Assembly: GCA_051530055.1 (NCBI GenBank)
Contig: CM121343.1
Location: forward strand, 7,318,044-7,382,043
Direction: 5' to 3'
Length of the DNA stretch: 64,000 nt
DNA from: Neoechinorhynchus agilis
Lineage: Eukaryota > Animalia > Acanthocephala
The notes beneath the pieces are model-generated. The model made no database searches and was not told where the DNA came from. It saw only the letters and a program-made list of their open reading frames with translations. Shown in pieces: positions 1 to 49,820 of this stretch. The first letter of the stretch is position 1. The number at the start of each line of letters is the position of its first letter. The translations under genes and the position numbers were made by a program.

Positions 1-165
1 GGTCCACTCCAGAATCAACCGTCACATTCATTTATAGTGACAAAACTCGAGTCTTCATGAGGACCCAAATGTTCATGGTTCCTCTTCCTTGTTTATCAAT
101 AAAACGCGTTATTATTAATCTAATTTCTCCTGAAAGGGATGTTTGACGAAAAACCTTGTTTTTTC
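1..165 (+). mobile_element. 3' terminal segment of the window's main LINE family (3' UTR end)
   Basis: Near-identical to 2416-2535 (ggtccactccagaatcaac...aataaaacgcgttattattaatc...gaaaaaccttgttt), which directly follows an RT C-terminal fragment. Confidence 0.7.
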
Positions 166-2109: not shown

Positions 2110-2535
2110 AGCCTCTAAAATTTTGTACAATTGATTTCTTCCCCACTGAATACCTTTATAAGATTTTCATCAAACAATCAACACGCCTCTCAACCCTATC
2201 GCCACCACAATATTTCTCACTTTTCACACGAGCACAACATTCGTAATCCCCATTCATTTCATTTTCTTATACCTCGCACCTCTCTTTACCTCCGCTCCTT
2301 TTTCCATACTGCTCAATCGTCTTGGATATCATAAACCGAGGAAAGACCCACCCTCACAAAGTCCCCTCCAAACAATAACCACAAACTTCCCCACTTGACC
2401 GGATATTCCAACTCGGTCCACTCCAGAATCAACAGTCACATTCATTTATCCTGCCTTGTTTATTAATAAAACGCGTTATTATTAATCTCATTTCTCCTGA
2501 AAGGGATGTTTTGACGAAAAACCTTGTTTTTGCCC
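2110..2535 (+). mobile_element. 5'-truncated LINE copy (ORF2 C-terminus plus 3' UTR)
   Basis: Encodes HEHNIRNPHSFH...PRTSLYLRSFF, matching the C-terminus of the minus-strand copy (3074-3349), followed by the shared 3' UTR. Confidence 0.75.
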
Positions 2536-2809: not shown

Positions 2810-5800
2810 AAAAAGATGAATCAGGGTTTCATTATAATAATAACACGTTTTATTTGTTGATGCATAAAGAACACGACCCATGTATCTTTGGGTCGTCATG
2901 AACACTCGAGTTTTGATTGGAAAATGAAACTGGCTATTGATTTTGGAGTGGATTACGAGTCCGGGCGGGTAGCAATATCCGGTCGGGTTGGAAGGTCCGT
3001 TCTGGTAGTAATTGGTGTTTATTGTTTGCAGGAACGCTTGTGAAGTTGGTTTTTCCTCCGGTTCATTTCGGGATTATGATATCCGAGAAGATTTGGCAGC
3101 AAGGAAAAAGGAGCGGAGGTAGAGGGAGGTGCGAGGTAGAGGAGGATGAAATGAATTAGGATTACGAGTGTTGTGCTCGTATGAAAAGAGGGCGATATGT
3201 GAAAGAAATCGTGGTGGTAGGGTTGATAGGCGTTTTGTTTGTTTTAAGAAAATAGTATCAAGGCATTCGGTGAGAGAGGGAAAGTCAGTTGTGCAATTTT
3301 TAGATGCTCTTTTATGAAGAATTTCAAGACGACGGAGGATAGGTTGCAAAATACGGGGTAATCGTAGGTAAGGGATGGTAAGTTAAAGAAGAAGTAAAAT
3401 TTGTAAAGGTCGAGTGTAGAAATTCCTAAATATTGGAGGCGTTTGAGGTGATAAATTTTAAAGGTGTTGTGCTCGACGGAGAGAATGATGTGCGATTCCC
3501 AGTTCAAATTTGATTGAAATTGGATACCCAGAATTCTTAGGGAGGTTACTCGTAGGATGTCATTTAGAAGCTCAGGGGATGATGTGGGGTTGCGGGAGAG
3601 AGGGGATCATTTCAAAGCATTTAGAGAAATTGAGATGGAGTTTGTAATTGGTGCAGAAATCTTTTATGCGTGTGATTTTGTTAGAGGTTAAGGAGTGAGA
3701 GAGGTGGGGTGGTGAATGGGTGATGAGGGTGAGATCGTCGGCATATAAGAAGAGTGAGAGGAGAGAGGTCTGAGGTTGTTTAGAAAAACATTAAAGAGAA
3801 GTGGTAACAGTACAGCACTTTGAGGTACGCCTTTGGTGAGATATAGGTTGATAGAAAAATTAGAACGGCAGTGAATGTATTGTTTGCGATTGTGAAGATA
3901 AGATTCGAGCCATTGGATCTGCCACAAGTTGAGACCAAAATCGGAGCAGGCCCAGAGAAGGAGTGAGTGGTCCACTTAGTCGAAAGCTTTAGATAAATCA
4001 AGTTGAATGAGATGGGTGGCATGGGAGGGATTATTGTAGAGGTTACGCAGAATCGTGTCATAAATGCAAAGTAAGGCAGCGGTTGCAGAAAATCTGAGTC
4101 GGAAGCCAAATTGTAGGGGCGATAACTTTTCGTGGGGAAGTGAAAGGCAAGATTTAAAACATTTTTCGATGATTTTTGAAAGAGCGGGTAGAATGGAAAT
4201 TGGACGGACAGTTTTCAGGCAAGAGGGGTAGATATCATATAAAAAGCTAAGGTTTATAATGCGGGTAAGAGAGTCGATTAGTTCAGGGATGATGCAGCGA
4301 AGAGCCCAGTTTGGGATTTCGGATTGAGAGGACAAATTTTTAGGTAATTTCATGAGATACTTTAGTACTTCATATGATGAAACTGAGGGGAGTATTATCG
4401 AGTTGACAGAAGCTTCAGTTGTGGGCGTAAAAGATTGTGTGGTGACTGAAGTTGATCAGTGATTGTAAACTGAGTCAGGGCAGAGGTTCTGATTCATGGA
4501 ATCTAGAACTTGTTTTAATTCAGTGGAGGTCAAATTAGCGAAGGGATCCGGGTGGTGTATACCAAGAGCGTTTTTGACGGCCCGCCACCATGTTGAGTTG
4601 CCACCTGATCAAATTTTAGAGGAAAGGAAATTTTTGCGGGCGAGAAGTATTTCATTCGTAAATGCCTTTTGTAAACGGGGAGAGTGGGAGTTATTGCGAT
4701 GGGACCTAGAAGCTTGCCTTTGTAAAAGTTTCAGAATGTGGGTTATCCATAGAGGGTCGCGGTTGGAGATTCTAATGAATTTCTTGGGAATTGCCGAAGC
4801 TAGGGAATTCTCTATGATTGAGGTTAGGGAGGACATGTCCAAGGAAGGGCCATTTGTGTTGTTAGAGTGGAATGTGCGAATATTATAGTTGAACAATTTT
4901 ATAAAATTTTGGATATGATGATCACGTTTATCCCAGACGGGTAAACGGAGAGATTTCATACGCTGAGGTGGGGTGGACGGAGTGATGAGGGCAGAGGAAT
5001 GGCCAGAGTTCGCGAGGAGAGGGAGTTTAGAGGCGGATGAGTAGGCGTCGATATTTGTGAACACTTTGTCGAGGTGAGCGTCAAAACGAGTTGGGAAGTC
5101 AATAAATTGAAGCAACTCGGAGAACGGTAGAAGAGGAAATAGATTATTGAAGTCCCCTGCAATTAAGAAATGGTGCGAATTTGTGGAGTTTATGAGCTCC
5201 ATCATAGAGTCAATTTGGAGCAAAGAGGATTCAGGACGAGAGGCCGGAGGGCGATAGACGCCAGCAATGGTGAATTCTCAAAGGCCGTTTCTCAGAGGAG
5301 TTATGAAATGGACTGTGATTAATTCTAGATCGGCGTTTTGTAGAGAGCAGTAAAGTAGCGATTGTCGTACGTAAATTGAGACCCCTGGGCGGTCATCGCG
5401 CTATGTATGGAAGGAAGAGTACCCGGGAAGGATGGCTGAATCGTTGTTGAAGGGGGTAATCCACGTTTCTGTTAAGATGACTACGTCTACTTTTGAGGTA
5501 AATGAAATGAGTGAAATTTCATCTAGTTAAGGAAGGAGGCTACGAGTATTGGAGTAGAAAACGGTGGGAAAGGGAGTTTTGGATTTCGGGAAATGGGGGA
5601 GGGCGGAAGTGAGGGAGATTGGGGTTGCATTGTTCGTTGCGGGTGGTGGGTTAAGGGAGGAATCGTTACGGGATGCCGACAAAGAACGATTGATTAGCCC
5701 AAAGAGAGAAGTTCGGGGGCGACTCCAAAATTTGAGTTGGAATGAGTGAATGGTAATGATAGAAATGAGTTTAGGGTTGGGACTTTGCATGGATCAGCTA

Positions 5801-6699: not shown

Positions 6700-9600
6700 A
6701 TAATTTTTCCTTTTAGGCACACAGGCAACCGATATCTCGGATCAGAGAAGTGATTCAATACTTAAACTCTCCAAAACATACGGTCATGAGTTTTACATGA
6801 ATCCCTCCAGATATTTGGATACCTCCTGAGGAGACGGACTCGTCATTTTGTTTCCTTCCCCTTTCGTTATGAGTCATCGACGCTAATGGATTTTGAGTAC
6901 TTTGACTCTGAAACACAGATTCGGAGCTCAAGTCCACTTCGACACAGCTACGGAATGTACAAACTCTGCCAGTTTTATACCTCGGGGCAAGTACTGAATT
7001 TTCTTATGTCTCCTGGCAAGCCGGTTCAGTTAATTAAGTGAACATCCCTTGCTCGCCATTTTTCCTTTTAGGCATACAGGCAACCGATATTTTGGATCAG
7101 AAAAGTGATTGAATCACTTAAACTCTCCAAAACATACGGTCATGAGTTTTGCATGAATCCCTCCAGACATTTGGATACCTCCTGAGGAGACGAACTCGTC
7201 ATTTTGTTTCCTTCCCCATTCGTTATGAGTCATCGACGCTAATGGATTTTGAACACTTTGACTCTGAAACACAGATTCGGGACTCAAGTCCACTTCGACA
7301 CAGCTACGGAATGTACAAACTCTGCCAGTTTTATACCTCGGGGCAAGTACTGAATTTTCTTATGTCTCCTGGTAAGCCGGTTCAGTTAATTAAGTGAACA
7401 TCCCTTGCTCGGCTTTTTTCCTTTTAGGCATACAGGCAACTGATATTTTGGATCGGAGAAGTGATTGAATCACTTAAACTCTCCAAAACATACGGTCATG
7501 AGTTTTACATGAATCCCTTCAGATATTTGGATACCTCCTGAGGAGACGGACTCGTCATTTTGTTTCCTTCCCCATTCGTTATGAGTCATCGACGCTAATA
7601 GATTTTGAGTACTTTGACTCTGAAACACAGATTCGGGACTCAAGTCCACTTCGACACAGCTACGGAATGTACAAACTCTGCCAGTTTTATACCTTGGCTC
7701 AAAAATTGAATTATCTTTAAGTTTGGCTAAGCCGGTTCAGTTAATTAAGTGAACATCCCTTGCTCGCCTTTTTTCCTTTTAGGCATACAGGCAACTGATA
7801 TTTTGGATCGGAGAAGTGATTGAATCACTTAAACTCTCCAAAACATACGGTCATGAGTTTTACATGAATCCCTCCAGATATTTGGATACCTCCTGAGGAG
7901 ATGGACTCGTCAATTTTGTTTCCTTCCCCATTCGTTATGAGTCATCGACGCTAATGGATTTTGAACACTTTGACTCTGAAACACAGATTCGGGACTCAAG
8001 TCCACTTCGACACAGCTACGGAATGTACAAACTCTGCCAGTTTTATACCTCGGGGCAAGTACTGAATTTTCTTATGTCTCCTGGTAAGCCGGTTCAGTTA
8101 ATTAAGTGAACATCCCTTGCTCGCCTTTTTTCCTTTTAGGCATACAGGCAACCGATATTTTGGATCGGAGAAGTGATTGAATCACTTAAACTCTCCAAAA
8201 CATACGGTCATGAGTTTTACATGAATCCCTCCAGACATTTGGATACCTCCTGAGGAGACGGACTCGTCATTTTGTTTCCTTCCCCATTCGTTATGAGTCA
8301 TCGACGCTAATGGATTTTGAACACTTTGACTCTGAAACACAGATTCGGGACTCAAGTCCACTTCGACACAGCTACGGAATGTACAAACTCTGCCAGTTTT
8401 ATACCTCGGGGCAAGTACTGAATTTTCTTATGTCTCCTGGTAAGCCGGTTCAGTTAATTAAGTGAACATCCCTTGCTCGCCTTTTTCCTTTTAGGCATAC
8501 AGGCAACCGATATTTTGGATCGGAGAAGTGATTGAATCACTTAAACTCTCCAAAACATACGGTCATGAGTTTTACATGAATCCCTCCAGATATTTGGATA
8601 CCTCCTGAGGAGACGGACTCGTCATTTTGTTTCCTTCCCCATTCGTTATGAGTCATCGACGCTAATGGATTTTGAACACTTTGACTCTGAAACACAGATT
8701 CGGGACTCAAGTCCACTTCGACACAGCTACGGAATGTACAAACTCTGCCAGTTTTATACCTCGGGGCAAGTACTGAATTTTCTTATGTCTCCTGGTAAGC
8801 CGGTTCAGTTAATTAAGTGAACATCCCTTGCTCGCCTTTTTCCTTTTAGGCATACAGGCAACCGATATTTTGGATCGGAGAAGTGATTGAATCACTTAAA
8901 CTCTCCAAAACATACGGTCATGAGTTTTACATGAATCCCTCCAGATATTTGGATACCTCCTGAGGAGACGGACTCGTCATTTTGTTTCCTTCCCCTTTCG
9001 TTATGAGTCATCGACGCTAATGGATTTTGAGTACTTTGACTCTGAAACACAGATTCGGGGCTCAAGTCCACTTCGACACAGCTACGGAATGTACAAACTC
9101 TGCCAGTTTTATACCTCGGGGCAAGTACTGAATTTTCTTATGTCTCCTGGCAAGCCGGTTCAGTTAATTAAGTGAACATCCCTTGCTCGGCTTTTTTCCT
9201 TTTAGGCATACAGGCAACCGATATTTTGGATCGGAGAAGTGATTGAATCACTTAAACTCTCCAAAACATACGGTCATGAGTTTTACATGAATCCCTCCAG
9301 ATATTTGGATACCTCCTGAGGAGACGGACTCGTCATTTTGTTTCCTTCCCCATTCGTTATGAGTCATCGACGCTAATGGATTTTGAGTACTTTGACTCTG
9401 AAACACAGATTCGGGACTCAAGTCCACTTCGACACAGCTACGGAATGTACAAACTCTGCCAGTTTTATACCTCGGGGCAAGTACTGAATTTTCTTATGTC
9501 TCCTGGCAAGCCGGTTCAGTTAATTAAGTGAACATCCCTTGCTCGCCTTTTTCCTTTTAGGCATACAGGCAACCGATATTTTGGATCGGAGAAGTGATTG

Positions 9601-10047
9601 AATCACTTAAACTCTCCAAAACATACGGTCATGAGTTTTACATGAATCCCTCCAGACATTTGGATACCTCCTGAGGAGACGGACTCGTCATTTTGTTTCC
9701 TTCCCCATTCGTTATGAGTCATCGACGCTAATGGATTTTGAACACTTTGACTCTGAAACACAGATTCGGGACTCAAGTCCACTTCGACACAGCTACGGAA
9801 TGTACAAACTCTGCCAGTTTTATACCTCGGGGCAAGTACTGAATTTTCTTATGTCTCCTGGTAAGCCGGTTCAGTTAATTAAGTGAACATCCCTTGCTCG
9901 GCTTTTTTCCTTTTAGGCATACAGGCAACTGATATTTTGGATCGGAGAAGTGATTGAATCACTTAAACTCTCCAAAACATACGGTCATGAGTTTTACATG
10001 AATCCCTCCAGATATTTGGATACCTCCTGAGGAGACGGACTCGTCAT
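6700..10047 (+). repeat. Tandem array of a ~356-bp unit, ~9.4 copies
   Basis: The motif ccaaaacatacggtcatgag recurs at 6771, 7127, 7483, 7838, 8195, 8550, 8905, 9261, 9616 and 9972. Units are highly similar. Confidence 0.95.
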
Positions 10048-10849: not shown

Positions 10850-12690
10850 TAAACCTCCTCCTCAATTCAAAACCTCTGCACTGACTCAAATTACAGCCAT
10901 TACCCCATCTCAGACTATAAACAAAACTATAACTCCACAACTGACACTTCTGTCATCTCTTCAATACTCTTAGTTGCGTCATATGAAGTCCTCCAATCAA
11001 CAAATTATCCCGAAATTCGTATCCCAAACTAGTAACTTTTGATGAATTATCCCCGAACTCATCGACCTTCTTAATCTCATTGTAAATCACAGCTTTTTAT
11101 ATGGCATCCACCCCTCATACCTGAGAACTGCTAAAATGATCCATCTTCCGAAAAATGGATATCCGGTTTCCACCGATTCATTTGGTCCAATATCCATTCT
11201 GCACGCTCTTTAAAAAATCATATCGAAAACTTATTAAATCTCGCATTCGTCCACTTCTGAACAACAAATTATCGCACCTACAATTTGGCTTCCGGCCCAA
11301 ATACTCTGCAATAAATGCCCTACTTTGCATTATTGACTCGCTCCTACGAACCCTCGACAATAATCCTTCTCGCGTAATCCGTCTCATCCAAGTGGACTTG
11401 TTGAAAGCAATCGACCTCGTGGACCACTCACTCCTTTTTCCGGGCCTGTTCCAATCTCGATGTAAACTCATGGCAGATCCACTGGCTCGCCTCCTATCTT
11501 CACAATCGCCAACGAAACATTCATTGCAGTGCTACCTCCTCGATTATCGCCCTATCCATTTTCCTAAACGATCTTAAACCTCCATCCTCTCACTCCAATC
11601 TTTTCTTATACGCCGACGACCTCACCCTCATCACCCATTCACCATCCCACCTCTCCTTAACATCTAACGAAATCGCACATATCAAAGATTTCTGCACCAA
11701 TCATAAACTCTACCTGAACTTCTCTAACTACTTCGAGTTGATCCTCTCACTCCCGCAACCCCACATCATCCCCTGAGCTTCCATCCTCCAACATCTCAAC
11801 AAATCATAACTTAATAAAGTACAAAACGTGCAATCACCACCGTCCGCAAAATTGGAGCTTCTCTCCTTCCTCGGCTGTCGCTATCACGTTAGCAGCATTG
11901 CCTCGTTGTACTGCGAGCGAGATATTTTGTCGCAGGAATACACCGTCGTTTCTCTCAATTTCTTCAAGAGATCCTGGAGCAGAGTGCCGAGCTGCCAAGC
12001 ACTCCATACGCCTCTATTCCGAAGGGGACAAAATAGTGAGCCCTCGCTAAATCCCTGCATTTTCGTACCTTCCTCCCTTCCGCTGCACTGGCTGCACCTC
12101 CAGGGATTCCCGAAATTCTTATCCCAAACTAGTAACTTTTGATGAATTATCCCCGAACTCATCGACCTTCTTAATCTCATTGTAAATCACAGCTTTTTAT
12201 ATTGCATCCACCCCTCATACCTGAGAACTGCTGAAATGATCCTTCATGTCGCCTCCCTCTGAATTCTGGGTCTCCAATTTCAATCAAATCTGAAACGGGA
12301 ATCACACATTGCACTTTACCTCAGACGAAATACCTTTAAAATTTACCCCCTAAAACGCAACCGCCATTTGGGAATCTAACCCGCATCTGCCGTTATCCCG
12401 TCTTTTGCAACCTATCACAATCATAAATCCGTCGGCTTGAAGCGTTTCATAAAAGAGCCTCTAAAATTTGCACATTTGATTCTCCCCCTCGCGCTACCAC
12501 CACAATTTTTATCACATTTTATTCCACTTTTAACATGAGCACAACACTCGTAATCCTAATTCATTTCATCCTCCTTTGACCTCGCACCACCCTATACCTT
12601 CGCTCCTTATTCCTTACTACCCAATCCTCCCGGATATCAAGACCTGAAATGAACCTGAGGAAAGACCCAACCTCACAAATTCTCCTGCAA
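10850..12690 (+). mobile_element. Rearranged LINE copy of the same L2/CR1-group family (RT fragments, C-terminus, start of 3' UTR)
   Basis: HLQFGFRPKYSAINALLCIIDSLL...IQVDLLKAIDLVDHSLL and a YADD (tacgccgacgac) motif near 11608. A ~130-bp internal duplication (11010-11140 vs 12110-12243). The 3' UTR motif gaacctgaggaaagaccc lies at ~12650. Confidence 0.8.
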
Positions 12691-15600
12691 ACTGTATCCG
12701 ACCCACTGTATAAACCAACTCGAACGGATAATCCCCTACTGGATAATTCCGCCAGAACGGACCTCCCCGTGCTGTATAAACCAACCCTAACGGATAATCC
12801 CCCGCTGTATAAACCAACCCTAACAGATAATCCCCTTCTGGATAATTCCATCCGAACGGACATACGTCCACTGTATAAACCACCCCAACTGATAATCCCT
12901 TACTGGATAATTCCACCCGGACGGACATCCCCCTGCTGTATACCAACCCGAACATAATCCCCTGCTGTATAAACCAACCCTAACGGATAATCCCCTGCTG
13001 TATAAACCAACCCGAACTTATAATCCCCTGCTGTATAAACCAACCCTAACGGATAATCCCCTGCTGTATAAACCAACCCGAACAGATAATCCCCTTCTGG
13101 ATAATTCCATCCGAACGGACATACGTCCACTGTATAAACCACCCCAACTGATAATCCCTTACTGGATAATTCCACCCGGACGGACATCCCCTTTATAAAC
13201 CAACCCGAACATAATCCCCTTTATAAACCAACCCTAACGATAATCCCCTGCTGTATAAACCAACCCGAACTTAAATCCCCTCTGAAAACCAACCCTAACG
13301 GATAATCCCCTGCTGTATAAACCAACCCGAACGGACAATCCCCCGCTGTATAAACCAACCCGAACTTATAATCCCCTGCTGTATAAACCAACCCTAACGG
13401 ATAATCCCCTGCTGTATAAACAGACCCGAACGGATAATCCCCTTCTGGATAATTCCATCCGAACGGACATACGTCCACTGTATAAACCACCCCAACTGAT
13501 AATCCCTTACTGGATAATTCCACCCGGACAGACATCCCCCTGCTGTATAAACCAACCCGAACTTATAATCCCCTGCTGTATAAACCAACTCGAACGGATA
13601 ATCCCCTGCTGTATAAACCAACCCGAACGGATAATCCCCCGCTGTATAAACCAACCCGAACGGATAATCCACCGCTGTATAAACCAACCTGAACAGATAA
13701 TCCCCTACTGGATAATTCCCCCAGAACGGACATCATCCTGCTGTATTAACCAACCCGAACGGATAATGTGGATAATTCCACCAGAACGGACATCCCCCTA
13801 CTGTATAAAGCAACCCTAACAGATAATCCCCTTCTGGATAATTCCGCCCGAACGGCTAGTCTCCTGCTGTATAAACCAACCCCAACGGACTTCCCCCGCT
13901 GTATAAACCAACCCGAACGGATCATCCCCTACTGGATAATTCCACCCGGACGGACTCCCCCTGCTGTATAAACCAACCCTAACAGATAATCCCCTTCTGA
14001 ATAATTCCGCCAGAACGGACATCCCCCTGCTGTATAAACCAACCCGAACGGATAATCCCCTTCTGGATAAATCCGCAAGAACGGACATCCGCCCACTGTA
14101 TAAACCAACCCGAACGGATAATCCCCCGCTGTATAAACCAACCCGGACGGATAATCCCCTACTGGATAATTTCGCCAGAATGGACATCCGTCCACTGTAT
14201 AAACCAACCCGAACGGATAATCCCCTTCTGGATAGTTCCGCAAGAACGGACATCCCCTGCTGTATAAACCAACCTTACAGATGATCCCCTTCTGGATAAT
14301 TTCGCATGAACGGACATCCGCCCGCTGTATAAACCAACCCTAACAGATAATCCCCTACCGGATAATTCCACCCGGACGGACTTCCTCTGCTATATAAACC
14401 AACCCGAACGGATAATCCCCTTCTGGACTATTCCGCCAGAACGGACATCTCCCTCCTGTATTAACCAACCCGAACAGATAATCCCCTGCTGGATAATTCC
14501 GCCCGAGCGGACTTCCCCCTGCTGTATGAACCAACCCTAACAGATAATCCCCTTCTGGATAATTCCACCCGAACGGCTAGTCTCCTGCTGTATAAACCAC
14601 AAGAACCCTAACCCCCGAACGGCTATCTCCTGCTGTATAACCAACCCGAACGATAATCCCCTGCTGGATAATTCCCCCGACGGCTTCCCTGCTGTATAAC
14701 CAACCCAACGTAATCCCCTCTGGATAATTCCGACGCTCCCCTGCTGTATAAACCAACCCGAACGGATAATCCCCTTCTGGATAATTCCGCCCGAACGGCT
14801 ATCTCCCGCTGTATAAACCAACCCGAACCGATAATCCCCTGCTGGATAATTCCACCCGGACGGACTTCCCCCTGCTTTATAAACCAACCCGAACGGATAA
14901 TCTCTGGATAATCCGCCCGACGGACTCCCAAAACCAACCCCCTGTATAAACCAACCTAACAGATAATCCCCTTCTGGATAATTCCTCCGAAGGACATACG
15001 CCACTGTATAAACCCCCAACGATAATCCCTTACTGGATAATTCCACCCGGACGGACATCCCCCTGCTGTATAAACCAACCCGAACGGATAATCCCTCGCT
15101 GGATAATTCCGCCCGAGCGGGCCTCCCCCTGCTGTATAAACTAACCCGAACGGATAATCCCCTGCTGGATAATTCCGCCCGAGCGGGCCTCCCCCTGCTG
15201 TATAAACCAACCTACAGATAATCCCCTTCTTGATAATTTCGCCAGAACGGACATCCGCCCACTGCATAAACCAACCCGACGGATAATCCTTCTGGATAAT
15301 TCGCCAGACGGACATCTTAACCCGAACGGATAATCCCCTACTGGATAATTCCGCCCGAGCGGGCCTCCCCCTGCTGTATAAACCAACCCGAACGGATAAT
15401 CCCCTTCTGGACTATTCCGCCAGAACGGACATCTCCCTCCTGTATTAACCAACCCGAACAGATAATCCCCTGCTGGATAATTCCGCCCGAGCGGACCTCC
15501 CCCTGCTGTATGAACCAACCCTAACAGATAATCCCCTTCTGGATAATTCCACCCGAACGGCTAGTCTCCTGCTGTATAAACCAACCCGAACCGATAATCC

Positions 15601-17030
15601 CCTGCTGGATAATTCCGCCAGAACGGCTATCTCCCGCTGTATTAACCAACCCGAACCGATAATCCCCTGCTTGATAATTCCACCCGAACGGCTAGTCTCC
15701 TGCTGTATAAACCAACCCGAACCGTTAATCCCCTGCTGGATAATTTCGCATGAGCGGGCCTCCCCTGCTGTATAAACCAACCCGAACGGATAATCCCCTA
15801 CTGGATAATTCCGCCCGAACGGCTAGTCTCCCGCTGTATAAACCAACCCGAACCGATAATCCCCTGCTGGATAATTCCACCCGGACGGACTTCCCCCTGC
15901 TTTATAAACCAACCCGAACGGATAATCCCCTGCTGGATAATTCCGCCCGGACGGACTTCCCCCTGCTGTATAAACCAACCCTAACGGATAATCCCCTGCT
16001 GTATAAACCAACCCTAACAGATAATCCCCTTCTGGATAATTCCATCCGAACGGACATACGTCCACTGTATAAACCACCCCAACTGATAATCCCTTACTGG
16101 ATAATTCCACCCGGACGGACATCCCCCTGCTGTATAAACCAACCCGAACGGATAATCCCTCGCTGTATAATTCCGCCCGAGCGGGCCTCCCCCTGCTGTA
16201 TAAACTAACCCGAAGGGATAATCCCCTGCTGGATAATTCCGCCCGAGCGGGCCTCCCCCTGCTGTATAAACCAATCCTAACAGATAATCCCCTTCTTGAT
16301 AATTTCGCCAGAACGGACATCCGCCCACTGCATAAACCAACCCGGACGGATAATTTCCTTCTGGATAATTTCGCCAGATCGGACATCTTAACCCGAACGG
16401 ATAATCCCCTGCTGGATAATTCCGCCCGAGCGGGCCTCCCCTGATAATCTCCCGCTGTATAAACTAACCCGAACGGATAATCTCCTACTGGATAATTCCG
16501 CCCGAGCGGGCCTCCCCCTGCTGTATAAACCAATCCTAACAGATAATCCCCTTCTTGATAATTTCACCAGAAGGGACATCCGCCCACTGCATAAACCAAC
16601 CCGGACGGATAATTTCCTTCTGGATAATTTCGCCAGATCGGACATCTTAACCCGAACGGATAATCCCCTGCTGGATAATTCCGCCCGAGCGGGCCTCCTG
16701 ATAATCTCCCGCTGTATAAACTAACCCGAACGGATAATCTCCTACTGGATAATTCCGCCCGAGCGGGCCTCCCCCTGCTGTATAAACCAACTCGAACGGA
16801 TAATCCCCTGCTGGATAATTCCGCCCGAGCGGGCCTCCCCCTGCTGTATAAACCAATCCTAACAGATAATCCCCTTCTTGATAATTTCGCCAGAACGGAC
16901 ATCCGCCCACTGCATAAACCAACCCGGACGGATAATTTCCTTCTGGATAATTTCGCCAGATCGGACATCTTAACCCGAACGGATAATCCCCTGCTGGATA
17001 ATTCCGCCCGAACGGACTTATCCCTGCTGT
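12690..17030 (+). repeat. Satellite array A: ~31-32-bp monomers and ~63-bp dimers with irregular higher-order blocks
   Basis: Recurrent ctgtataaaccaacccgaacggataatcccc and ctggataattccgcccgaacggacatcccc. Starts immediately after the LINE 3' UTR motif. Confidence 0.95.
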
Positions 17031-31200: not shown

Positions 31201-33259
31201 AGTCTTTTATTTTCCGCATGTCCTACGACCCGCGCGTGTTATCCACAAATAAGTGTATCAAGACGAAACAATGCAGTTAGTGTGCGAAAATGATGACTAC
31301 ACACTGAACAGAATATCAGTCTTTAAATGTAGGTTTGCGTATTTTAAATAAAAAAGTCCGAATGATTAAGGTAACTTTGAAAAGTTCCACATACCTCATT
31401 GTCTTAATACCAGTTCTTGTAGTTTCCTTTCGTAAAAATCGAGTTTGCAAATAATGTTATCTTATAGCTAAAACAGTAACTGAGATACTTCATACTTACA
31501 AAACATTGCGAAGAAAAATATGTTCTCGCTTATAAGGTTGAGTCGAAATGTGATATTTGCCTTTTAATAAAAGTCCATGTTGTAGATGCAATATCTAAAT
31601 TGTTTACTTTATTATTGATAGAATACATGTCTCAAAAAATGCCTGCAATTTAAATGGACCTTAAAGTACTAACGACGCCATCATAGGTTTATGGAGTGAA
31701 GTAACCAATATATAATAAATCTCATCACCCTATTGTTCTTGAGTTAAACATAATGGCGAAGAACTGTTCACTTTTTGATAAAACAAGTTCAATGAGGTTT
31801 TCGGTCTAGGGACTTGACGTAATCCTTTTAGAGCGAATAAAAGCTTACCGAACATTACGTATACTCCTTCAAAGATCCTTGATCTGCTCCTAATAGAAAA
31901 CTTGTCTTTTAACAGCGTTCAACAATTTAGTGAACATTTGTAAAGAAACCATCATGCTTGTAAGATACGCAGGACCTTTAGGTTACAGTTTAAACAAGTG
32001 AAATCAATCTCCATAGATGCACCTTTTCGTCGATAATTCTATTGTCGTAGCTTTTCCTCTGAGTAGTCCGAATCGTTATACCGGTTTGTTTTTGATAATA
32101 TTTTAAGCACCAAAATCCAAAAGTATCAGTCGCCCAAATGAACTAAAGGTTGTTAATATAAAAATATAGTGAGATATTGTAGCGACATTGCGTCCAGACA
32201 ACAACTCAAATGACCGACAAGGATTAAGTTCCGATATTTTAATGCTAGTTTAATCTAAAAAATACAAGCTTTAACGAGCACGATGCAACAGAGGATATTT
32301 AAGACGAATCCAGTGACTCAGGATTAGTGTTCATGAGGACCCAAAAGTACATGGGTTCTATTCTTTTGGCTTTAATAAAATGTGAGATCGGCACGAGTTA
32401 TACTGCTGAAGTGAAAACAGCAAGTAGGAAAACGGACAGTGTAAAAAGGAATTATCAAGATTACTTGTTTAATCTCGTAGTTGAATTTGCCTATCATTGT
32501 ATAAACATTGCAGTGTAATTAACAAAAAACTTTATAAATAAAGTGGGACTATCAAGTCTGTTACTTGTAATCATGTGGACATTGTCAAAATCAATTTTAA
32601 ACAACTTTTTTTGACGAAAAGTTCAGTGAGACATTTTTTCATAATTGAGTACAAACCATCTCTTTCATTAATAACTTCGTCTTTTATTAAATGCCGCATT
32701 TTCAAAAATAAAATGCGCAAAGTTGCAGAAAAACAAGAAATTCACTCCTACCAATAATAAACTTGATGAAACGCATTAGCTATGCATTTTAAAAATTCTC
32801 CAAATCCAGAAAGACAGTAGAAACTCCACCTTTACAGCACCGCATCAGCTTAGCTTTAAAAAAATATAATTGGCGCATATTCATATCGCCTTTTCACGAC
32901 CGCAAACTAATCTTTGGAAATTTTATTGTGGTCTCTTCGACGCCCCTTAGATTATGCTGAAATATTTTAGCTAGAGGATACAAGGAACGAAAAGGATCTT
33001 CAATACTTGAATCACTTGTCGTTTACGATCTCAACTAAGGATTAACCGTAGCTTTTCTGAAAAAGATGCCGTAGTTTAGAATCCCATTATTTGTAAAATA
33101 CATTTTAATCTATTGATTTCATTATTTTATTTGAAACAAAAATCCCCCTTTATCCATTGTCTTAAATGATTGAGGAGAAATAAATTAATATTAGAAATTT
33201 GAATATGAACCTGAAATGATTCTGAGGCGCTCCTGCAAGCAAAAAACTCCAATTCGCCC

Positions 33260-33450
33260 ACTAGAACGGACCTTCCAACCTAACCGGATATTCTCAATCG
33301 AACGGACACATCCTCACCCGAACGAACCGTCCCCGACTGGATAGTTCCCGTCCGAATAGGAATCCCTCCGACCAGATAGATGAGGACCCAAAGATACATG
33401 GGCCATCCTAAACCTTTCTTTGTATTATCAATAAACGTGTTATTATTGTT
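33260..33450 (+). mobile_element. LINE 3' UTR fragment carrying ~3 satellite-type monomers followed by the terminal segment
   Basis: agaacggaccttccaacc..ccggatatt..cccgaacg..ccccgactggatagttccc..., then gaggacccaaagatacatggg..aataaacgtgttattatt. Confidence 0.7.
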
Positions 33451-35837: not shown

Positions 35838-38800
35838 GAGTTCGCGTGGGAATATCCAGCCGAGCGATGTCCGTTCGGGTGGGAATTGTCGGAGAGATGT
35901 CTATTCGGGCGGCACTATCAAGTCAGGTGATGTCCGTTCGAATGGGAACTATCCAGTCGGAGGATGTCAGTACGGGTGGAAATGGTTGGCGCGATGTCTA
36001 TTCGGCTATGACTTTCCAGTCGGGGGATGTCCATTCGGGTGAGAACTATCAAGTCAGGTGATTTCCGTTCGGGTTGGAACTATCCAGTCGGAGGATGTCA
36101 GTACGGGTGGCAATCGTTGGCGCGATGTCTATTCGGCTATGACTATCCAGTCGGGGGATGTACGTTCGGGTGGGAATGGTAAAAGGGATCTCCGTTCGGG
36201 TTTGACTTTCCAGTCGGGGGATGTCCATTCGGGTGGGAACTATCAAGTCAGGTGATGTCCGTTCGGGTGGGAACTATCCAGTCGGAGGATGTCAGTACGG
36301 GTGGAAATGGTTGGCGCGATGTCTATTCGGCTATGACTATTCAGTCGGGGGATGTACGTTCGGGTGGGAATGGTAAAAGGGATCTCCGTTCGGGTTTGAC
36401 TTTCCAGTCGGGGGATGTCCATTCGGGTGGGAACTATCAAGTCAGGTGTCCGTTCGGTGGGAACTATCCAGTCGGAGGATGTCAGTACGGGTGGAAATGG
36501 TTGGCGCGATGTCTATTCGGCTATGACTATTCAGTCGGGATGTACGTTCGGGTGGGAATGGTAAAAGGGATCTCCGTTCGGGTTTGACTTTCCAGTCGGG
36601 GGATGTCCATTCGGGTGGGAACTATCAAGTCAGGTGATGTCCGCTCGGGTGGGAACTATCCAGTCGGAGGATGTCAGTACGGGTGGTAATCGTTGGCGCG
36701 ATGTCTATTCGGCTATGACTATCCAGTCGGGGATGTACGTTCGGGTGGGAATGGTAAAAGGGATCTCCGTTCGGGTTTGACTTTCCAGTCGGGGGATGTC
36801 CATTCGGGTGGGAACTATCAAGTCAGGTGATGTCCGTTCGGGTGGGAACTATCCAGTCGGAGGATGTCAGTACGGGTGGAAATGGTTGGCGCGATGTCTA
36901 TTCGGCTATGACTATTCAGTCGGGGGATGTACGTTCGGGTGGGAATGGTAAAAGGGATCTCCGTTCGGGTTTGACTTTCCAGTCGGGGGATGTCCATTCG
37001 GGTGGGAACTATCAAGTCAGGTGATGTCCGCTCGGGTGGGAACTATCCAGTCGGAGGATGTCAGTACGGGTGGTAATCGTTGGCGCGATGTCTATTCGGC
37101 TATGACTATCCAGTCGGGGGATGTACGTTCGGGTGGGAATGGTAAAAGGGATCTCCGTTCGGGTTTGACTTTCCAGTCGGGGGATGTCCATTCGGGTGGG
37201 AACTATCAAGTCAGGTGATGTCCGCTCGGGTGGGAACTATCCAGTCGGAGGATGTCAGTACGGGTGGAAATCGTTGGCGCGATGTCTATTCGGCTATGAC
37301 TATTCAGTCGGGGGATGTACGTTCGGGTGGGAATGGTAAAAGGGATCTCCGTTCGAGTTTGACTTTCCAGTCGGGGGATGTCCATTCGGGTGGGAACTAT
37401 CAAGTCAGGTGATGTCCGCTCGGGTGGGAACTATCCAGTCGGAGGATGTCAGTACGGGTGGAAATGGTTGGCGCGATGTCTATTCGGCTATGACTATTCA
37501 GTCGGGGGATGTACGTTCGGGTGGGAATGGTAAAAGGGATCTCCGTTCGGGTTTGACTTTCCAGTCGGGGGATGTCCATTCGGGTGGGACTATCAAGTCA
37601 GGTGATGTCCGCTCGGGTGGGAACTATCCAGTCGGAGGATGTCAGTACGGGTGGAAATGGTTGGCGCGATGTCTATTCGGCTATGACTATCCAGTCGGGG
37701 GATGTACGTTCGGGTGGGAATGGTAAAAGGGATCTCCGTTCGAGTTTGACTTTCCAGTCGGGGGATGTCCATTCGGGTGGGAACTATCAAGTCAGGTGAT
37801 GTCCGTTCGGGTGGGAACTATCCAGTCGGAGGATGTCAGTACGGGTGGTAATCGTTGGCGCGATGTCTATTCGGCTATGACTATTCAGTCGGGGGATGTA
37901 CGTTCGGGTGGGAATGGTAAAAGGGATCTCCGTTCGGGTTTGACTTTCCAGTCGGGGGATGTCCATTCGGGTGGGACTATCAAGTCAGGTGATGTCCGCT
38001 CGGGTGGGAACTATCCAGTCGGAGGATGTCAGTACGGGTGGAAATGGTTGGCGCGATGTCTATTCGGCTATGACTATTCAGTCGGGGGATGTACGTTCGG
38101 GTGGGAATGGTAAAAGGGATCTCCGTTCGGGTTTGACTTTCCAGTCGGGGGATGTCAATTCGGGTGGGACTATCAAGTCAGGTGATGTCCGTTCGGGTGG
38201 GAACTATCCAGTCGGAGGATGTCAGTACGGGTGGAAATGGTTGGCGCGATGTCTATTCGGCTATGACTATTCAGTCGGGGGATGTACGTTCGGGTGGGAA
38301 TGGTAAAAGGGATCTCCGTTCGGGTTTGACTTTCCAGTCGGGGGATGTCCATTCGGGTGGGACTATCAAGTCAGGTGATGTCCGTTCGGGTGGGAACTAT
38401 CCAGTCGGAGGATGTCAGTACGGGTGGAAATGGTTGGCGCGATGTCTATTCGGCTATGACTATTCAGTCGGGGGATGTACGTTCGGGTGGGAATGGTAAA
38501 AGGGATCTCCGTTCGAGTTTGACTTTCCAGTCGGGGGATGTCCATTCGGGTGGGACTATCAAGTCAGGTGATGTCCGTTCGGGTGGGAACTATCCAGTCG
38601 GAGGATGTCAGTACGGGTGGAAATGGTTGGCGCGATGTCTATTCGGCTATGACTATTCAGTCGGGGGATGTACGTTCGGGTGGGAATGGTAAAAGGGATC
38701 TCCGTTCGAGTTTGACTTTCCAGTCGGGGGATGATAATTCGGGTGGGACTATCAAGTCAGGTGATGTCCGTTCGGGTGGGAACTATCCAGTCGGAGGATG

Positions 38801-41800
38801 TCAGTACGGGTGGAAATGGTTGGCGCGATGTCTATTCGGCTATGACTATTCAGTCGGGGGATGTACGTTCGGGTGGGAATGGTAAAAGGGATCTCCGTTC
38901 GAGTTTGACTTTCCAGTCGGGGGATGTCCATTCGGGTGGGACTATCAAGTCGGTGATGTCCGTTCGGGTGGGAACTATCCAGTCGGAGGATGTCAGTACG
39001 GGTGGTAATCGTTGGCGCGATGTCTATTTGGCTATGACTATCCAGTCGGGGGATGTACGTTCGGGTGGGAATGGTAAAAGGGATCTCCGTTCGAGTTTGA
39101 CTTTCCAGTCGGGGGATGTCAATTCGGGTGGGACTATCAAGTCAGGTGATGTCCGTTCGGGTGGGAACTATCCAGTCGGAGGATGTCAGTACGGGTGGAA
39201 ATGGTTGGCGCGATGTCTATTCGGCTATGACTATTCAGTCGGGGGATGTACGTTCGGGTGGGAATGGTAAAAGGGATCTCCGTTCGAGTTTGACTTTCCA
39301 GTCGGGGGATGTCCATTCGGGTGGGACTATCAAGTCAGGTGATGTCCGTTCGGGTGGGAACTATCCAGTCGGAGGATGTCAGTACGGGTGGTAATCGTTG
39401 GCGCGATGTCTATTCGGCTATGACTATCCAGTCGGGGGATGTACGTTCGGGTGGGAATGGTAAAAGGGATCTCCGTTCGAGTTTGACTTTCCAGTCGGGG
39501 GATGTCCATTCGGGTGGGACTATCAAGTCAGGTGATGTCCGCTCGGGTGGGAACTATCCAGTCGGAGGATGTCAGTACGGGTGGAAATGGTTGGCGCGAT
39601 GTCTATTCGGCTATGACTATTCAGTCGGGGGATGTACGTTCGGGTGGGAACTATCAACAGGGATGTCCGTTCGGGATAGTACGGTGGAATGTTGGCGCGA
39701 TGTCTATTCGGCTATGACTATTAAGTCGGATGTTTCGAGTTTGACTTTCCAGTCGGGGGATGTCCATTCGGGTGGGACTATCAAGTCAGGTGATGTCCGT
39801 TCGGGTGGGAACTATCCAGTCGGAGGATGTCAGTACGGGTGGTAATCGTTGGCGCGATGTCTATTCGGCTATGACTATCCAGTCGGGGGATGTACGTTCG
39901 GGTGGGAATGGTAAAAGGGATCTCCGTTCGAGTTTGACTTTCCAGTCGGGGGATGTCCATTCGGGTGGGAACTATCAAGTCAGGTGATGTCCGCTCGGGT
40001 GGGAACTATCCAGTCGGAGGATGTCAGTACGGGTGGAAATGGTTGGCGCGATGTCTATTCGGCTATGACTATTCAGTCGGGGGATGTACGTTCGGGTGGG
40101 AATGGTAAAAGGGATCTCCGTTCGGGTTTGACTTTCCAGTCGGGGGATGTCCATTCGGGTGGGACTATCAAGTCAGGTGATGTCCGCTCGGGTGGGAACT
40201 ATCCAGTCGGAGGATGTCAGTACGGGTGGAAATGGTTGGCGCGATGTCTATTCGGCTATGACTATTCAGTCGGGGGATGTACGTTCGGGTGGGAATGGTA
40301 AAAGGGATCTCCGTTCGGGTTTGACTTTCCAGTCGGGGGATGTCCATTCGGGTGGGACTATCAAGTCAGGTGATTTCCGCTCGGGTGGGAACTATCCAGT
40401 CGGAGGATGTCAGTACGGGTGGAAATGGTTGGCGCGATGTCTATTCGGCTATGACTATTCAGTCGGGGGATGTACGTTCGGGTGGGAATGGTAAAAGGGA
40501 TCTCCGTTCGGGTTTGACTTTCCAGTCGGGGGATGTCCATTCGGGTGGGAACTATCAAGTCAGGTGATGTCCGTTCGGGTGGGAACTATCCAGTCGGAAG
40601 ATGTCAGTACGGGTGGAAATGGTTGGCGCGATGTCTATTCGGCTATGACTATTAAGTCGGGGGATGTACGTTCGGGTGGGAATGGTAAAAGGGATCTCCG
40701 TTCGAGTTTGACTTTCCAGTCAGGGGATGTCCATTCGGATGGGAACTATCAAGTCAGGTGATGTCCGTTCGGGTGGGAACTATCCAGTCGGAAGATGTCA
40801 GTACGGGTGGAAATGGTTGGCGCGATGTCTATTCGGCTATGACTATTAAGTCGGGGGATGTACGTTCGGGTGGAAATGGTAAAAGGGATCTCCGTTCGAG
40901 TTTGACTTTCCAGTCGGGGGATGTCCATTCGGATGGGAACTATCAAGTCAGGTGATGTCCGTTCGGGTGGGAACTATCCAGTCGGAGGATGTCAGTACGG
41001 GTGGAAATGGTTGGCGCGATGTCTATTCGGCTATGACTATTAAGTCGGGGGATGTACGTTCGGGTGGAAATGGTAAAAGGGATCTCCGTTCGAGTTTGAC
41101 TTTCCAGTCAGGGGATGTCCATTCGGATGGGAACTATCAAGTCAGGTGATGTCCGTTCGGGTGGGAACTATCCAGTCGGAGGATGTCAGTACGGGTGGTA
41201 ATCGTTGGCGCGATGTCTATTTGGCTATGACTATTCAGTCGGGGGATGTACGTTCGGGTGGAAATGGTAAAAGGGATCTCCGTTCGGGTTTGACTTTCCA
41301 GTCGGGGGATGTCCATTCGGATGGGACTATCAAGCCAGGTGATGTCCGTTCGGGTGGGAACTATCCAGTCGGAGGATGTCAGTACGGGTGGTAATCGTTG
41401 GCGCGATGTCTATTCGGCTATGACTACCCAGTCGGTGGATGTACGTTCGGGTGGGAATGGTAAAAGGGATCTCCGTTCGGGTTTGACTTTCCAGTCAGTT
41501 GATGTCCGCTCGGGTGGAAACTATACAGTCGGAGGATGTCAGTACGGATGGTAATCGTTGGCGCGATGTCTATTCGGCTATGTCTATCCAGTCGGGGGAT
41601 GTACGTTCGGGTGGGAATGTTAAAAGGCATCTCCGTTCGAGTTTGACTTTCCAGTCTAGGGATGTCAATTCGGGTGCGACTATCAAGTCAGGTGATGTCC
41701 GCTCGGGTGGGAACTATCCAGTCGGAGGATGTCAGTACGGGTGGTAATCGTTGGCGCGATGTCTATTCGGCTACGACTATCCAGTCGGGGGATGTACGTT

Positions 41801-44200
41801 CGGGTGGGAATGGTAAAAGGGATCTCCGTTCGAGTTTGACTTTCCAGTAGGGGGATGTCCATTCGGGTGGGAACTATCAAGTCAGGTGATGTCCGTTCGG
41901 GTGGGAACTATCCAGTCGGAGGATGTCAGTACGGGTGGAAATGGTTGGCGCGATGTCTATTCGGCTATGACTATCCAGTCTGGGGATGTACGTTCGGGTG
42001 GGAATGGCAAAAGGGATCCCCGTTCGGGTTTGACTTTCCAGTCGAAGGATGCCCATTCGGGTGGGACGATCAAGTCAGCTGATGTCCGTTCGGGTTGGAA
42101 CTATCCAGTCGGAGGATGTCAGTACGGGTGGTAATCGTTGGCGCGATGTCTATTCGGCTATGACTATCCAGTCGGGGGATGTACGTTCGGGTGGGAATGG
42201 TAAAAGGGTTCTCCGTTCGGGTTTGACTTTCCAGTCGAAGGATGTCCATTCGGGTGGGACTATCAAGTCAGGTGACGTTCGCTCGGGTGGGAACTATCCA
42301 GTCGGAGGATGTCAGTACGGGTGGAAATGGTTGGCGCGATGTCTGTTCGAGTTGGACTATCTTGTCGGGGGATGTCCGTTCGGGTGGCAGTTGTCGAAGA
42401 AATGTCCATTCGGGTGATACTATCCAGTCGGGGGATGTCTGGACGGGTGGGAATTGTCGGAGGGATGTCTATTCGGTTTGCACTATCCAGTCGGGGGATA
42501 TCCGTTCGGGTGGGAATCGTCGGCGGGATGTCCGTTCGGGAAGGGCTTTCCAGTTGGGGGATGTCCGTTCGGGTGGGAATCGTAGGAGGATTGTCTATTC
42601 GGACGGGACTACCCAGTCGGGGGATGTCCGTCCCGATTCCAATGGTCGGCGTTGGGCTCTGATTATCCAGTTGGGGAATGTACGTTGGGGTAGGAATAGT
42701 CGAAGACATGTCCGTTCGGATATGACTTTCCAGTCGGGGGATTTCCGTTCGTGTTCGAAAGGTCGGAGAATGCCCATTCGGGTAGGAACTATCCAGTCGG
42801 GTGTTGTCCATTAAGGTTTTAATGGTCGGAGGGATGTCCGTTCGGGTTTGACTATCCAGTCGGGGGATATCCGTTCGGGTGGGAATCTTCGGCGGGATGT
42901 AGATTCGGATTAGATTATGCAGTAGGGGGATGTCCGTTCGGGCATGAATGGTCGAAGGAATGCCATTTGGGTGGCAACTATCCAGTCGGAGGATGGCCGT
43001 TCGGGTTGGAATGGTCGGAGTGATGTCTATTTGACTATGACTATCCACTCGGGGGATGTGCGTTCGGGTGTCAGTGGTCGAAGGGATGTCCGTTCGGGTT
43101 CTACTTTGCAGTCGAGGGATGTCCGTTCGGTTGGGAATGTAGTCGGGGAATGTCCGTTAAGGTTTGAATGGACCCAGGGATGTCCTTTCGGGTTGGACTA
43201 TCCAGTCGGGGGATGTCTGTAAGGTTATAATGGAACGAGGGATGTCCGTTTGGATTGGACTATCCAGTCGGCGGATGTCCGTTAGGATGGGAATGGTGGA
43301 AGGGATGTCCGTTCGGGTTTTACTTTTAAGTCGGGGATGTCCGTTCGGAAAGGAATGGTCGGAAGGATGTATATTCGGGTGGGAATATCAATTCGAGGGA
43401 CGTCCGTTCAGGTGGGAATGGTCGGAGGGATGCCAATTCTAGTGGGACTATCCAGTCGGGGTATGTAAGTACGGGTGGGATTGGTCGGAGCGATGTCCGT
43501 TCGGCTATAACTTTCCAGTCGGGGATGTCCGTTCGGGCGGGAATGGTCGGAGATATGTCTATTCGGGTTGGACTTTCCAGTCGGGGGATGTCCTTTCAAG
43601 TAGGAATGGTCGGAAGGATGTCTATTCGGGTTGGACTTTCCAGTCGGGGGATGTCGGTTCAAGTAGGAATGGTCGGAAGGATGTCTATTCGGGTGGCCGT
43701 ATCGAATCGAGGGATGGCCGTTCGGGTTGGAATGGTCAGACTATCCAGTCAAGGGGTGCTCGTTCGGATGGGAATGGCCGGAGAGGGTTCATTCGGAAGG
43801 GATTATCATGTAGGGGGATGTCATTTCGGGGTGGGAATGGTCGGAGCAATTCCCATTCGGGTGGGAACTATCAATTGGGGGGTGTCCGTTCGGGTTGAAA
43901 TGGTCGAGGGGATACCCATTCGGGTGGGACTATCCATTCCGGGTATGTCCGTTCGGGTAGGAATGGTGGGGGATACCCATTCGTGTGGGACTATACAGTC
44001 GGGGGATGCCCGGACGCGTGGGAATGGTCGGAGGGATGTCTATTCTGGTTGAACTTTCCAGTCGATGGATGTCCGTTCGGGTGGGGGCTATCCAGTCGGG
44101 AGATGTCCGGACGCGTGGGAATGGTCGGAGGGATGTCTATTCTGGTTGAACTTTTCAGTCGTTGGATGTCCGTTCGGGTGGGACTATCCAGTCGGGGATG
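35838..44200 (-). repeat. Satellite array B: ~32-bp monomers; homogeneous 193/194-bp six-monomer higher-order repeat (~35930-42350), diverged monomers to 44200
   Basis: Identical ORF calls recur every 194 bp (36827, 37021, 37215, 37409) or 193 bp (37959, 38152, 38345, 38538). Each unit has six gatgtc/gatct-initiated monomers. Confidence 0.95.
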
Positions 44201-44640
44201 TGAGCTCGGTTGCGAAATGGTGGTTATTTTTTGAAGGGGAGTTTGTAAGGTTTGCTTTTAATCAGGCTCATTTTAAGTTATGATATCCAAAAGGATTTAG
44301 CAGCGGTAGGGGAGGATGAAACGAATTAGGATTACAAGTGTTGTGCTCGTGTGAAGGGGGGATACAATGTAGTTGTAGGGTTGATAGGCGTTTTGTTTGT
44401 TTTAAGAAAATAGTATCAAGGCTTTCGGTGAGAGGATGAAAGTCAGCTGTGCAAATTTTAGATGCTCTTTTATGAAACATTTTACGGCGACGGAGTTGAG
44501 GTTTTGAAATGTTGCAAAATACGGAATAACCGTAGATGATGGAAAGTAAAATAAAGCTGAAATTTGTAGAGATGGGGTGAAGGGATTCTTTAATGTTGGC
44601 CCAGAATTCTTTGGGAGGTTACTCGTAGGATATCATTTAG
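44200..44640 (-). mobile_element. 5'-truncated LINE copy (ORF2 C-terminus) abutting array B
   Basis: ESLDTIFLKQTKRLSTL...HEHNTCNPNSFHPPLP...GYHNLK, homologous to 3074-3349. Confidence 0.8.
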
Positions 44641-49354: not shown

Positions 49355-49590
49355 TTGTGCAGTCGAGAATACCTTTATAAGATTTTCATCAAAGAATCCA
49401 AACGCCTCTTAAGCCTACAACCACAATATTTCCCACTTTTCACACCTCCGCTCCTTATTCCTTGCGTCCCATATCTTCTCGGATATCATAATCCCGAAAT
49501 GAACCTGAGGAAAGACCCGACCTCACAAACTCTCCTTCACCCGAACGGACATACCGAACTCGTAATCCACTCCAAAATCAACAGCCACTT
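49355..49590 (+). mobile_element. 5'-truncated LINE 3' fragment with a single monomer-like motif
   Basis: gaatacctttataagattttcatcaaa...gaacctgaggaaagacccgacctcacaaact..cacccgaacggacat..cgtaatccactccaaaatc. Confidence 0.7.
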
Positions 49591-49820
49591 TCGTTTACCG
49601 CTATCATTTGCTTCTTTGAACGGATTTTTTTGGTGGTGAGTGACTCAATGGTGCCATAAAAACCGGTAATGTGATACAGATTTTTATAGCTACCACCAAA
49701 TAAGCGATAGTCAAATGAACATCAATTGATTATGATTCGTTTAGTTGTAAGATGACCGTTTTGAGAAAATTAGCAGAATTTTCAAAGTTTTGTACATGAT
49801 TTTCCTAGTTTTATTTCTAT

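Follow-up and report, generated by a model that had tools for sequence, protein, structure and literature searches.

How does a satellite array come to begin directly behind the 3′ end of a retrotransposon, and does the retrotransposon carry such arrays about the genome? The question is raised by a 64,000-nt stretch of DNA from the acanthocephalan Neoechinorhynchus agilis (C3:7318044-7382043, C3 being contig CM121343.1; hereafter the window), in which a long array of 33-bp units, array A, follows the decayed end of a long interspersed nuclear element (LINE). The original prediction held that this LINE family bears a hyper-expandable repeat in its 3′ untranslated region (UTR) and disperses satellite arrays by retrotransposition. 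We compared the sequences of 39 fetched genomic loci (L001-L039) and about 60 UTR ends from an assembly totaling 46.2 Mb, with 94.26% of this total in its three large contigs; the sequences summarized below are the 33-bp array units and short motifs only. The account that we regard as probable is that short UTR seeds of the repeat were spread by the LINE and expanded in place into arrays, with A and a neighboring array, A′, being local duplicates.

Array A (12706..17030, plus strand) measured 4325 bp and contained ~131 units of 33 bp belonging to two alternating types, with higher-order periods of 197, 259 and 323 bp. Tandem Repeats Finder (TRF) reported a 33/66/99-bp array at 12706-17017, and direct reading placed the last unit at ~17030. 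As had been proposed, the array started right after the LINE C-terminus and a UTR motif: the TGA stop codon at 12645-12647 was followed by the UTR start (12657..12705, plus strand), consisting of a conserved motif (12657-12678) and an anchor remnant (12679-12705), and the first array unit lay 59 bp past the stop codon of the decayed LINE, directly beyond the UTR motif. The preceding LINE body with the end of open reading frame 2 (ORF2) spanned 10868..12647 on the plus strand and was recognized by a reverse transcriptase (RT) fragment and by homology to other copies. The RVT_1 match in this fragment, at 11155-11577(+), scored 27.1 bits (E 4e-6), just under the Pfam cut-off of 29.6, and the homologous copy at 3976-4353(-) scored 33.1 bits, above the cut-off; the Pfam search gave no match for the C-terminal part of ORF2. 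The remnant contained a 138-bp internal duplication (11008-11145 = 12108-12245), and the 1.8 kb preceding array A were homologous to the minus-strand element at 4492-3024 and to fragments at 2218-2373, 44538-44311 and 49444-49539. In three better-kept copies (L036, L028 and L024) a long open ORF2 frame stopped 9 nt ahead of the motif GAGGAAAGACCCAACCTCACAA, and the TGA at 12645-12647 is the window equivalent of that stop codon. Copies truncated at the 5′ side and sharing one common 3′ end were found at 33200-33447, L003 and L006. On the sequence evidence of the RT domain and of these truncated copies, the element is classified as a non-long-terminal-repeat (non-LTR) retrotransposon, that is, a LINE, whose family copies were typically 70-85% alike.

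Comparison of the UTR ends resolved a common order of the 3′ UTR, in which the ORF2 stop was followed by the conserved 22-nt motif GAGGAAAGACCCAACCTCACAA, an anchor of ~33 nt finishing in ..caattcccac, the 33-bp units, an optional tail, an inverted repeat and the AATAAA end. The units varied in number, were C-rich on the sense strand and consisted of two similar 16-17-bp halves of the ..CGAACGGACATCCCC and ..CGACCGGATATTCCCAC types; they were internal to the UTR and not at its extreme end. The tail of ~60 nt before the inverted repeat characterized one subfamily only, and the common 3′ terminus read AATAAA..GTTATTATT(ATT)n, with a long (ATT)n run seen in L031. The motif had 344 genome matches at ≤3 mismatches, compared to 0 for the reversed control. 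The conserved 9-bp inverted repeat, GAGGACCCA..TGGGTCCTC, retained pairing in 80% of cells over 20 copies, but covariation was no better than in shuffles and RNAalifold predicted no consensus structure for the 3′ inverted-repeat region, so that any structural role of the inverted repeat would be putative.

Ordinary copies of the family carried the repeat in a low-copy state of about 1-6 units, or ~95-253 bp, as established from 16 sampled copies and 32 anchor-perfect genome copies. The distance from the motif to the inverted repeat was 103-253 bp in the 16 sampled copies with both landmarks, and the anchor-perfect copies numbered 14, 8, 7 and 3 for gaps of 95-125, 126-156, 157-187 and 188-248 bp, respectively, with all controls at 0. 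In divergent copies from each of the three large contigs, the low-copy units were found at one and the same place inside the UTR. As originally predicted, this LINE family thus has a 33-bp repeat that varies in number and is tied to a single 3′ UTR site. The monomers of the long arrays aligned to the unexpanded UTR at +32 to +98 past the motif, with z-scores against shuffled monomers reaching 18 for array B (described below) and 11 for array A.

Within the window, the low-copy sites that had been named near 2950-3010, 33260-33380 and 49540-49560 proved real and contained ~2 half-units, ~4.5 units and ~1 unit, respectively. The first belonged to the family copy at 2832..5223 on the minus strand, which combined an endonuclease-like ORF, the RVT_1 domain (33 bits) and a UTR with the half-units at 3037-2898, and which retained the tail, the inverted repeat at ~2897-2874 and the end; its ORF at 4609-5223(-) had an "AGDFN"-type motif and appeared endonuclease-like by eye, with no Pfam match at E 0.01. 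The second was a short 5′-truncated copy (33200..33447, plus strand) with a UTR containing the units at 33228-33381, the inverted repeat and a AATAAACGTGTTATTATT end, and the third a 3′ end fragment (49444..49597, plus strand) with the motif, the unit at 49529-49597 and the start of the tail. Two more pieces of the family were a 3′ end fragment with ~1 unit and the hairpin part deleted (2218..2451, plus strand) and, at 1..119 on the plus strand, the distal tail and inverted repeat of a copy starting upstream of the window (L001 9689-10000).

Between the low-copy state and the longest arrays, the genome preserved a graded series in which the expanded repeat was still enclosed by LINE sequence. 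The array in L006 (C3:1.06 Mb) was 0.45 kb long, with 533 bp from motif to hairpin and ~13 units, and kept the anchor, tail, inverted repeat and end. L003 (C3:3.385 Mb; 0.74 kb, ~790 bp, ~22 units) kept a degenerate motif, the anchor and a complete 3′ end; L004 (C3:7.08 Mb; 1.5 kb, 1563 bp, ~45 units) kept the motif, anchor and inverted repeat; and L005 (C3:2.72 Mb; at least 3.5 kb, motif-to-hairpin distance at least 3600 bp, >100 units) kept the tail, inverted repeat and complete end. Thus, in all four loci the LINE inverted repeat stood after the array, followed by the (ATT)n-type end except in L004. Five arrays (A, B, L003, L004 and L006) began immediately behind the anchor, give or take a few bases, and among the 12 arrays inspected 7 were flanked, on one side or both, by a LINE UTR in matching orientation. 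Neither of the two findings named beforehand as contradicting the original prediction, a majority of arrays with no adjacent co-oriented LINE end or a monomer that fails to align to the unexpanded UTR, was thus obtained in this sample. Expansion at this UTR site, as envisaged by the original prediction, was observed at a dozen or more loci and over sizes from 0.45 to 8.4 kb, the arrays being separately amplified as judged by their private variants. Further arrays of the 33-bp unit were located at C3:7.445, 7.645, 5.42 and 2.25 Mb and at C2:6.38, 9.43 and 13.34 Mb. The array searches were seeded with queries from C3 arrays, which biased detection toward C3, and the array numbers are not genome-wide counts; an exact triple-core pattern was too strict for counting arrays.

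The largest array, B (35845..44205, minus strand), had ~253 units in 8.4 kb on the strand opposite to A; TRF placed it at 35840-44201, and direct reading gave the ends cited above. The original estimates had been ~140 units for A and ~260 for B. B began at the same UTR position as A in a second LINE copy, an ORF2-end and UTR remnant (44206..44640, minus strand) with a degenerate motif and an anchor at ~44233, and this flank was 78-85% identical to that of A. The LINE-proximal 2.7 kb of B were heterogeneous, and the distal 5.7 kb formed a 193/194-bp higher-order repeat with 97% identity. GC content was 0.50 in A and 0.54 in B compared to 0.44 in the window, with the C-rich strand being the LINE-sense strand. 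Derivation of B by a simple inverted duplication of the "satellite-LINE-array" segment was considered and rejected: the order of parts did not fit, and A and B shared no 16-mers.

A different relationship connected A to A′, a 2.3-kb array in L001 just upstream of the window and 15 kb upstream of A. The two had a 221-bp flank that was 99.5% identical, far above the 70-85% usual among family copies, and shared 52-76% of their 16-mers. In A′, short microhomologies marked the point, further upstream in the LINE, at which the array met it, and the LINE remnant enclosed a fragment of array. A and A′ are accordingly one array lineage, produced by local DNA-level duplication with microhomology-mediated rearrangement. 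None of A, A′ and B had a distal LINE end: no tail or inverted repeat followed the array, and the nearest such sequences were those of other copies. The distal LINE ends at A and B are either lost or were never present.

For all other pairs of loci, 16-mer sharing was ≤0.21 and mostly <0.10. Because the arrays carry private sequence variants, as this low sharing demonstrates, those at different loci have separate amplification histories. L003, L004, L005 and B each had a homogeneous interior and less homogeneous edges, and growth in place is indicated both by these homogeneous interiors with frozen older edges and by the 97% identity of the 193-bp higher-order repeats. An opposing explanation is that the arrays were made during reverse transcription, by RT slippage or template switching on the repeated UTR, and were inserted ready-made, in which case the LINE would indeed disperse arrays. 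It would account for the variation in unit number among complete copies with both UTR flanks and a 3′ end, and for the retention of the LINE's own 3′ end by arrays of 0.45 to at least 3.5 kb, and the tandem arrays of other periods (192, 180 and 72 bp) from the same 3′ region hint at a property of the element itself. However, no array variants were common to any two distant loci, the 193-bp higher-order repeats and frozen edges fit exchange after insertion, A, A′ and B lacked the 3′ end that each new insertion must carry, and target-site duplications (TSDs) were not found at three truncated copies; we therefore consider ready-made insertion unlikely. The search at these three copies detected no shared word of ≥7 bp, which is weak evidence as the copies are old. 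In the absence of TSDs and of array variants common to distant loci, we saw no sign that long arrays were retrotransposed, and the claim that arrays were dispersed in this way was not sustained: distant loci shared no variants, the pattern was that of in-place growth, A and A′ were local duplicates, and distal ends and TSDs were not found.

Retrotransposition demonstrably spreads the 1-6-unit seed, and in the sequence of events that we favor this scattering of LINE copies, each with ~1-6 units, is the first step. Some seeds would have lengthened after insertion to 0.45 to >8 kb through DNA-level events, either unequal exchange or slippage during replication. Arrays A and B would represent two such expansions from two different LINE copies; A and A′ are one lineage duplicated locally, and A, A′ and B would since have lost the distal LINE UTR.

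Several observations weigh against seeding by the LINE followed by expansion in place. L002 and L009 had no LINE flank, L007 and L008 were ambiguous, and in L008 the array lay upstream of the LINE motif; with 39 loci sampled, the share of arrays with LINE flanks is a sample value and not a genome-wide one. The lack of a distal LINE end at A, A′ and B makes it possible that a LINE copy joined a pre-existing array by recombination. Private variants could also have arisen from one old array family by local homogenization, and, with no TSDs found, even the intermediate arrays could have formed before or after insertion. Some of these points fit the converse order, in which the 33-bp satellite came first, for instance as a C3 subterminal repeat, and the LINE either captured units once or has copies that recombine with or insert into arrays. 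The arrays without LINE flank, the reversed arrangement in L008 and the missing distal UTR at A, A′ and B are in line with this order, as is the chromosomal distribution: most of the 33-bp-unit arrays were found on C3, the smallest large contig, where ~7 clustered in the last 750 kb and one stood at the contig end. The C3-derived queries bias detection toward C3, however, and this may explain the distribution. Other observations against a satellite origin are the constant place of the units inside the UTR of divergent copies from each of the three large contigs, the four arrays that have the expected UTR parts, properly ordered, on both sides or at their end, and the five arrays whose start matches the anchor almost to the base. 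We judge the satellite-first order to be slightly less plausible still than ready-made insertion.

The quality of the assembly also bears on the seeding and in-place expansion account. The N. agilis draft is a hybrid Oxford Nanopore Technologies (ONT)/Illumina build from about 50 pooled worms (PMC12690905), and array lengths are for this reason to be read with care. In raw whole-genome shotgun (WGS) reads, all bins across the junction between the LINE and array A were covered, as were most bins of the array itself; a few (for example, 13224-13324) were nearly without reads at ≥95% identity, which suggests local consensus errors at these read-poor positions and makes the exact sequence and length of array A not fully trustworthy. 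The ONT-based, pooled-worm origin of the assembly and the array bins without matching short reads thus count against our interpretation, and would agree with mis-assembly of the arrays or their junctions from noisy long reads. The reads crossing the LINE-to-array junction and most array bins, and the recurrence of the same architecture at independent loci, argue against such an artifact, which we consider very improbable. Two runs presumed to be RNA yielded short, low-depth contigs only, over the LINE remnant and the array, and these were indistinguishable from DNA carry-over.

The same LINE 3′ end had also given rise to tandem arrays of other periods. Units of 192 bp, comprising the ORF2 end and the UTR up to ..cattcatttat, were arrayed in L011 (3609-4753), L012-L014, L019 and several small contigs, with 2-9 units per array, 96-97% identity inside a locus and unit junctions at short microhomology. 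Other arrays from this end had 180-bp units (L018) or 72-bp units (L015 3705-4014), and a ~395-bp repeat was present on contig C9; some arrays of the 192/180/72-bp types terminated in a normal LINE end. WGS depth at the UTR motif was ~tenfold over that of its flanks, with loose read ends running into the 192-bp satellite variant, and these read ends suggest that the 192-bp variant is ~tenfold more abundant than single-copy DNA. A possibility that we think doubtful is that the family's RT itself makes tandem 3′-end duplications, which would explain the 33-, 72-, 180- and 192-bp arrays from one region.

An array with 67-68% identity to B occupied C3:7814367-7816131 and stopped no more than 20 bp short of the contig end (7816151). 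This array was homologous to B, and its G-rich strand ran 5′ to 3′ outward. The ends of the other large contigs showed no array of this kind, A and B lie in the contig interior, and (TTAGGG)4 was absent from the assembly even with one mismatch allowed. Acanthocephalan telomeric DNA has been reported as unknown, TTAGGG probes fail in Pomphorhynchus, and the chromosome ends of Acanthocephalus stain GC-rich (PMC10592040). It is conceivable, although we think it doubtful, that the G-rich strand of the LINE-UTR repeat serves as a chromosome-end repeat or a substitute for one in acanthocephalans, with A and B being subterminal relatives of an end-capping array. The capping array would then be maintained by recombination or by end-primed reverse transcription of the LINE 3′ UTR.

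Additional repeats and genes were recorded in the window and the sampled loci. A 356-bp satellite at 6704-10047(+), with 9.4 copies at 97% identity, abutted the LINE remnant upstream of array A, and three further copies lay inverted at 22601-23655, 12.5 kb away. Inside the LINE remnant, the segment at ~11810-12110 was a very high-copy insert with WGS depth of ~200-800 per strand compared to ~10-20 nearby, representing a short element or a satellite. A near-perfect inverted repeat of ~40 bp in 2595-2700 (arms at ~2601-2640 and 2655-2695), located between two tail-to-tail LINE copies, may be a small foldback element or one resembling a miniature inverted-repeat transposable element (MITE), and a 240-bp tandem repeat at 51281-52003 had 3 copies at 97% identity. 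Outside the window, L035 and L039 (C1:3.78 and 3.53 Mb), 250 kb apart, had an identical rearranged UTR in which the inverted-repeat region came straight after the motif and an inverted second copy stood behind it; this arrangement suggests a segmental duplication. Exons of host genes stood beside the repeats and coded for a Cid1/MTPAP-type nucleotidyltransferase (59218-60567), a TCP-1/CCT chaperonin subunit (61638-62972), a TAF6 C-terminal domain (49821-50894(-)) and a C2H2 zinc-finger protein (25659-26789(-)). Because these exons adjoin the repeats, the arrays lie in gene-bearing DNA and not in a gene desert.

Repeated expansion from one fixed UTR site, which the original prediction had singled out as the notable part, was observed as described above, but it has a close precedent in the 3′ UTR repeats of Ogre elements. 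The hypervariable 3′ UTR tandem repeats of Ogre (Ty3/gypsy) gave rise to the PisTR-A satellite in pea (Macas et al. 2009, cited in the review PMC9659126). This is the closest analog, as there, too, tandem repeats at a fixed 3′ UTR site of a retroelement vary in number among copies and are amplified to satellite arrays; Ogre, however, is a plant LTR retrotransposon, whereas the acanthocephalan element is a non-LTR one with a 33-bp unit, arrays of at most ~8 kb and many separate small expansions. Satellites from LINE 3′ ends include the cetacean common satellite (L1 3′ end), chicken HinfI/SCR1 (CR1 3′ UTR and ORF2 end) and the Drosophila 18HT satellite from the HeT-A/TART 3′ UTR (PMC9659126). 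As here, the 3′ part of a LINE supplied their monomers, but there the unit itself was formed from a stretch of the element, whereas in N. agilis a pre-existing UTR repeat expands and a series from 1 to ~250 units is preserved; the 192-bp arrays of the present LINE are closer to the chicken CR1 case. The central tandem repeats of DINE-1/Helentron elements (in Drosophila and, PMC7492417, in oyster) and of the foldback element Tetris (PMC4079207) also expand to satellite-like arrays. These mobile elements, too, distribute a short tandem repeat of their interior, and it undergoes expansion at many insertion sites, although they are DNA transposons or Helitrons and the seed described here resides in a retrotransposon UTR. 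The SVA elements of hominids carry a variable-number tandem repeat (VNTR). VNTRs are also found inside the fungal telomere-associated non-LTR elements FoTeR/MoTeR (PMC12857005). Both SVA and FoTeR/MoTeR thus resemble the N. agilis family in having a VNTR within a non-LTR-type retroelement; the FoTeR VNTRs differ in their position, mostly on the 5′ side of the ORF, and are not reported to form kilobase-scale arrays across many loci.

The birth of a satellite from an internal repeat of a transposable element (TE) is therefore already known, and what is notable here is the phylum, the completeness of the series and the number of separate expansions. Acanthocephala is an understudied phylum, and the related array that caps one contig end bears on the nature of its chromosome ends. 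One small genome preserves almost all steps in the birth of a satellite from a mobile element: the 1-6-unit seed, the 13, 22, 45 and >100 units still inside the element, and the kilobase arrays with higher-order repeats in which the element end is lost. With these steps preserved, long reads from single worms could measure directly how fast the arrays expand and by what mechanism.

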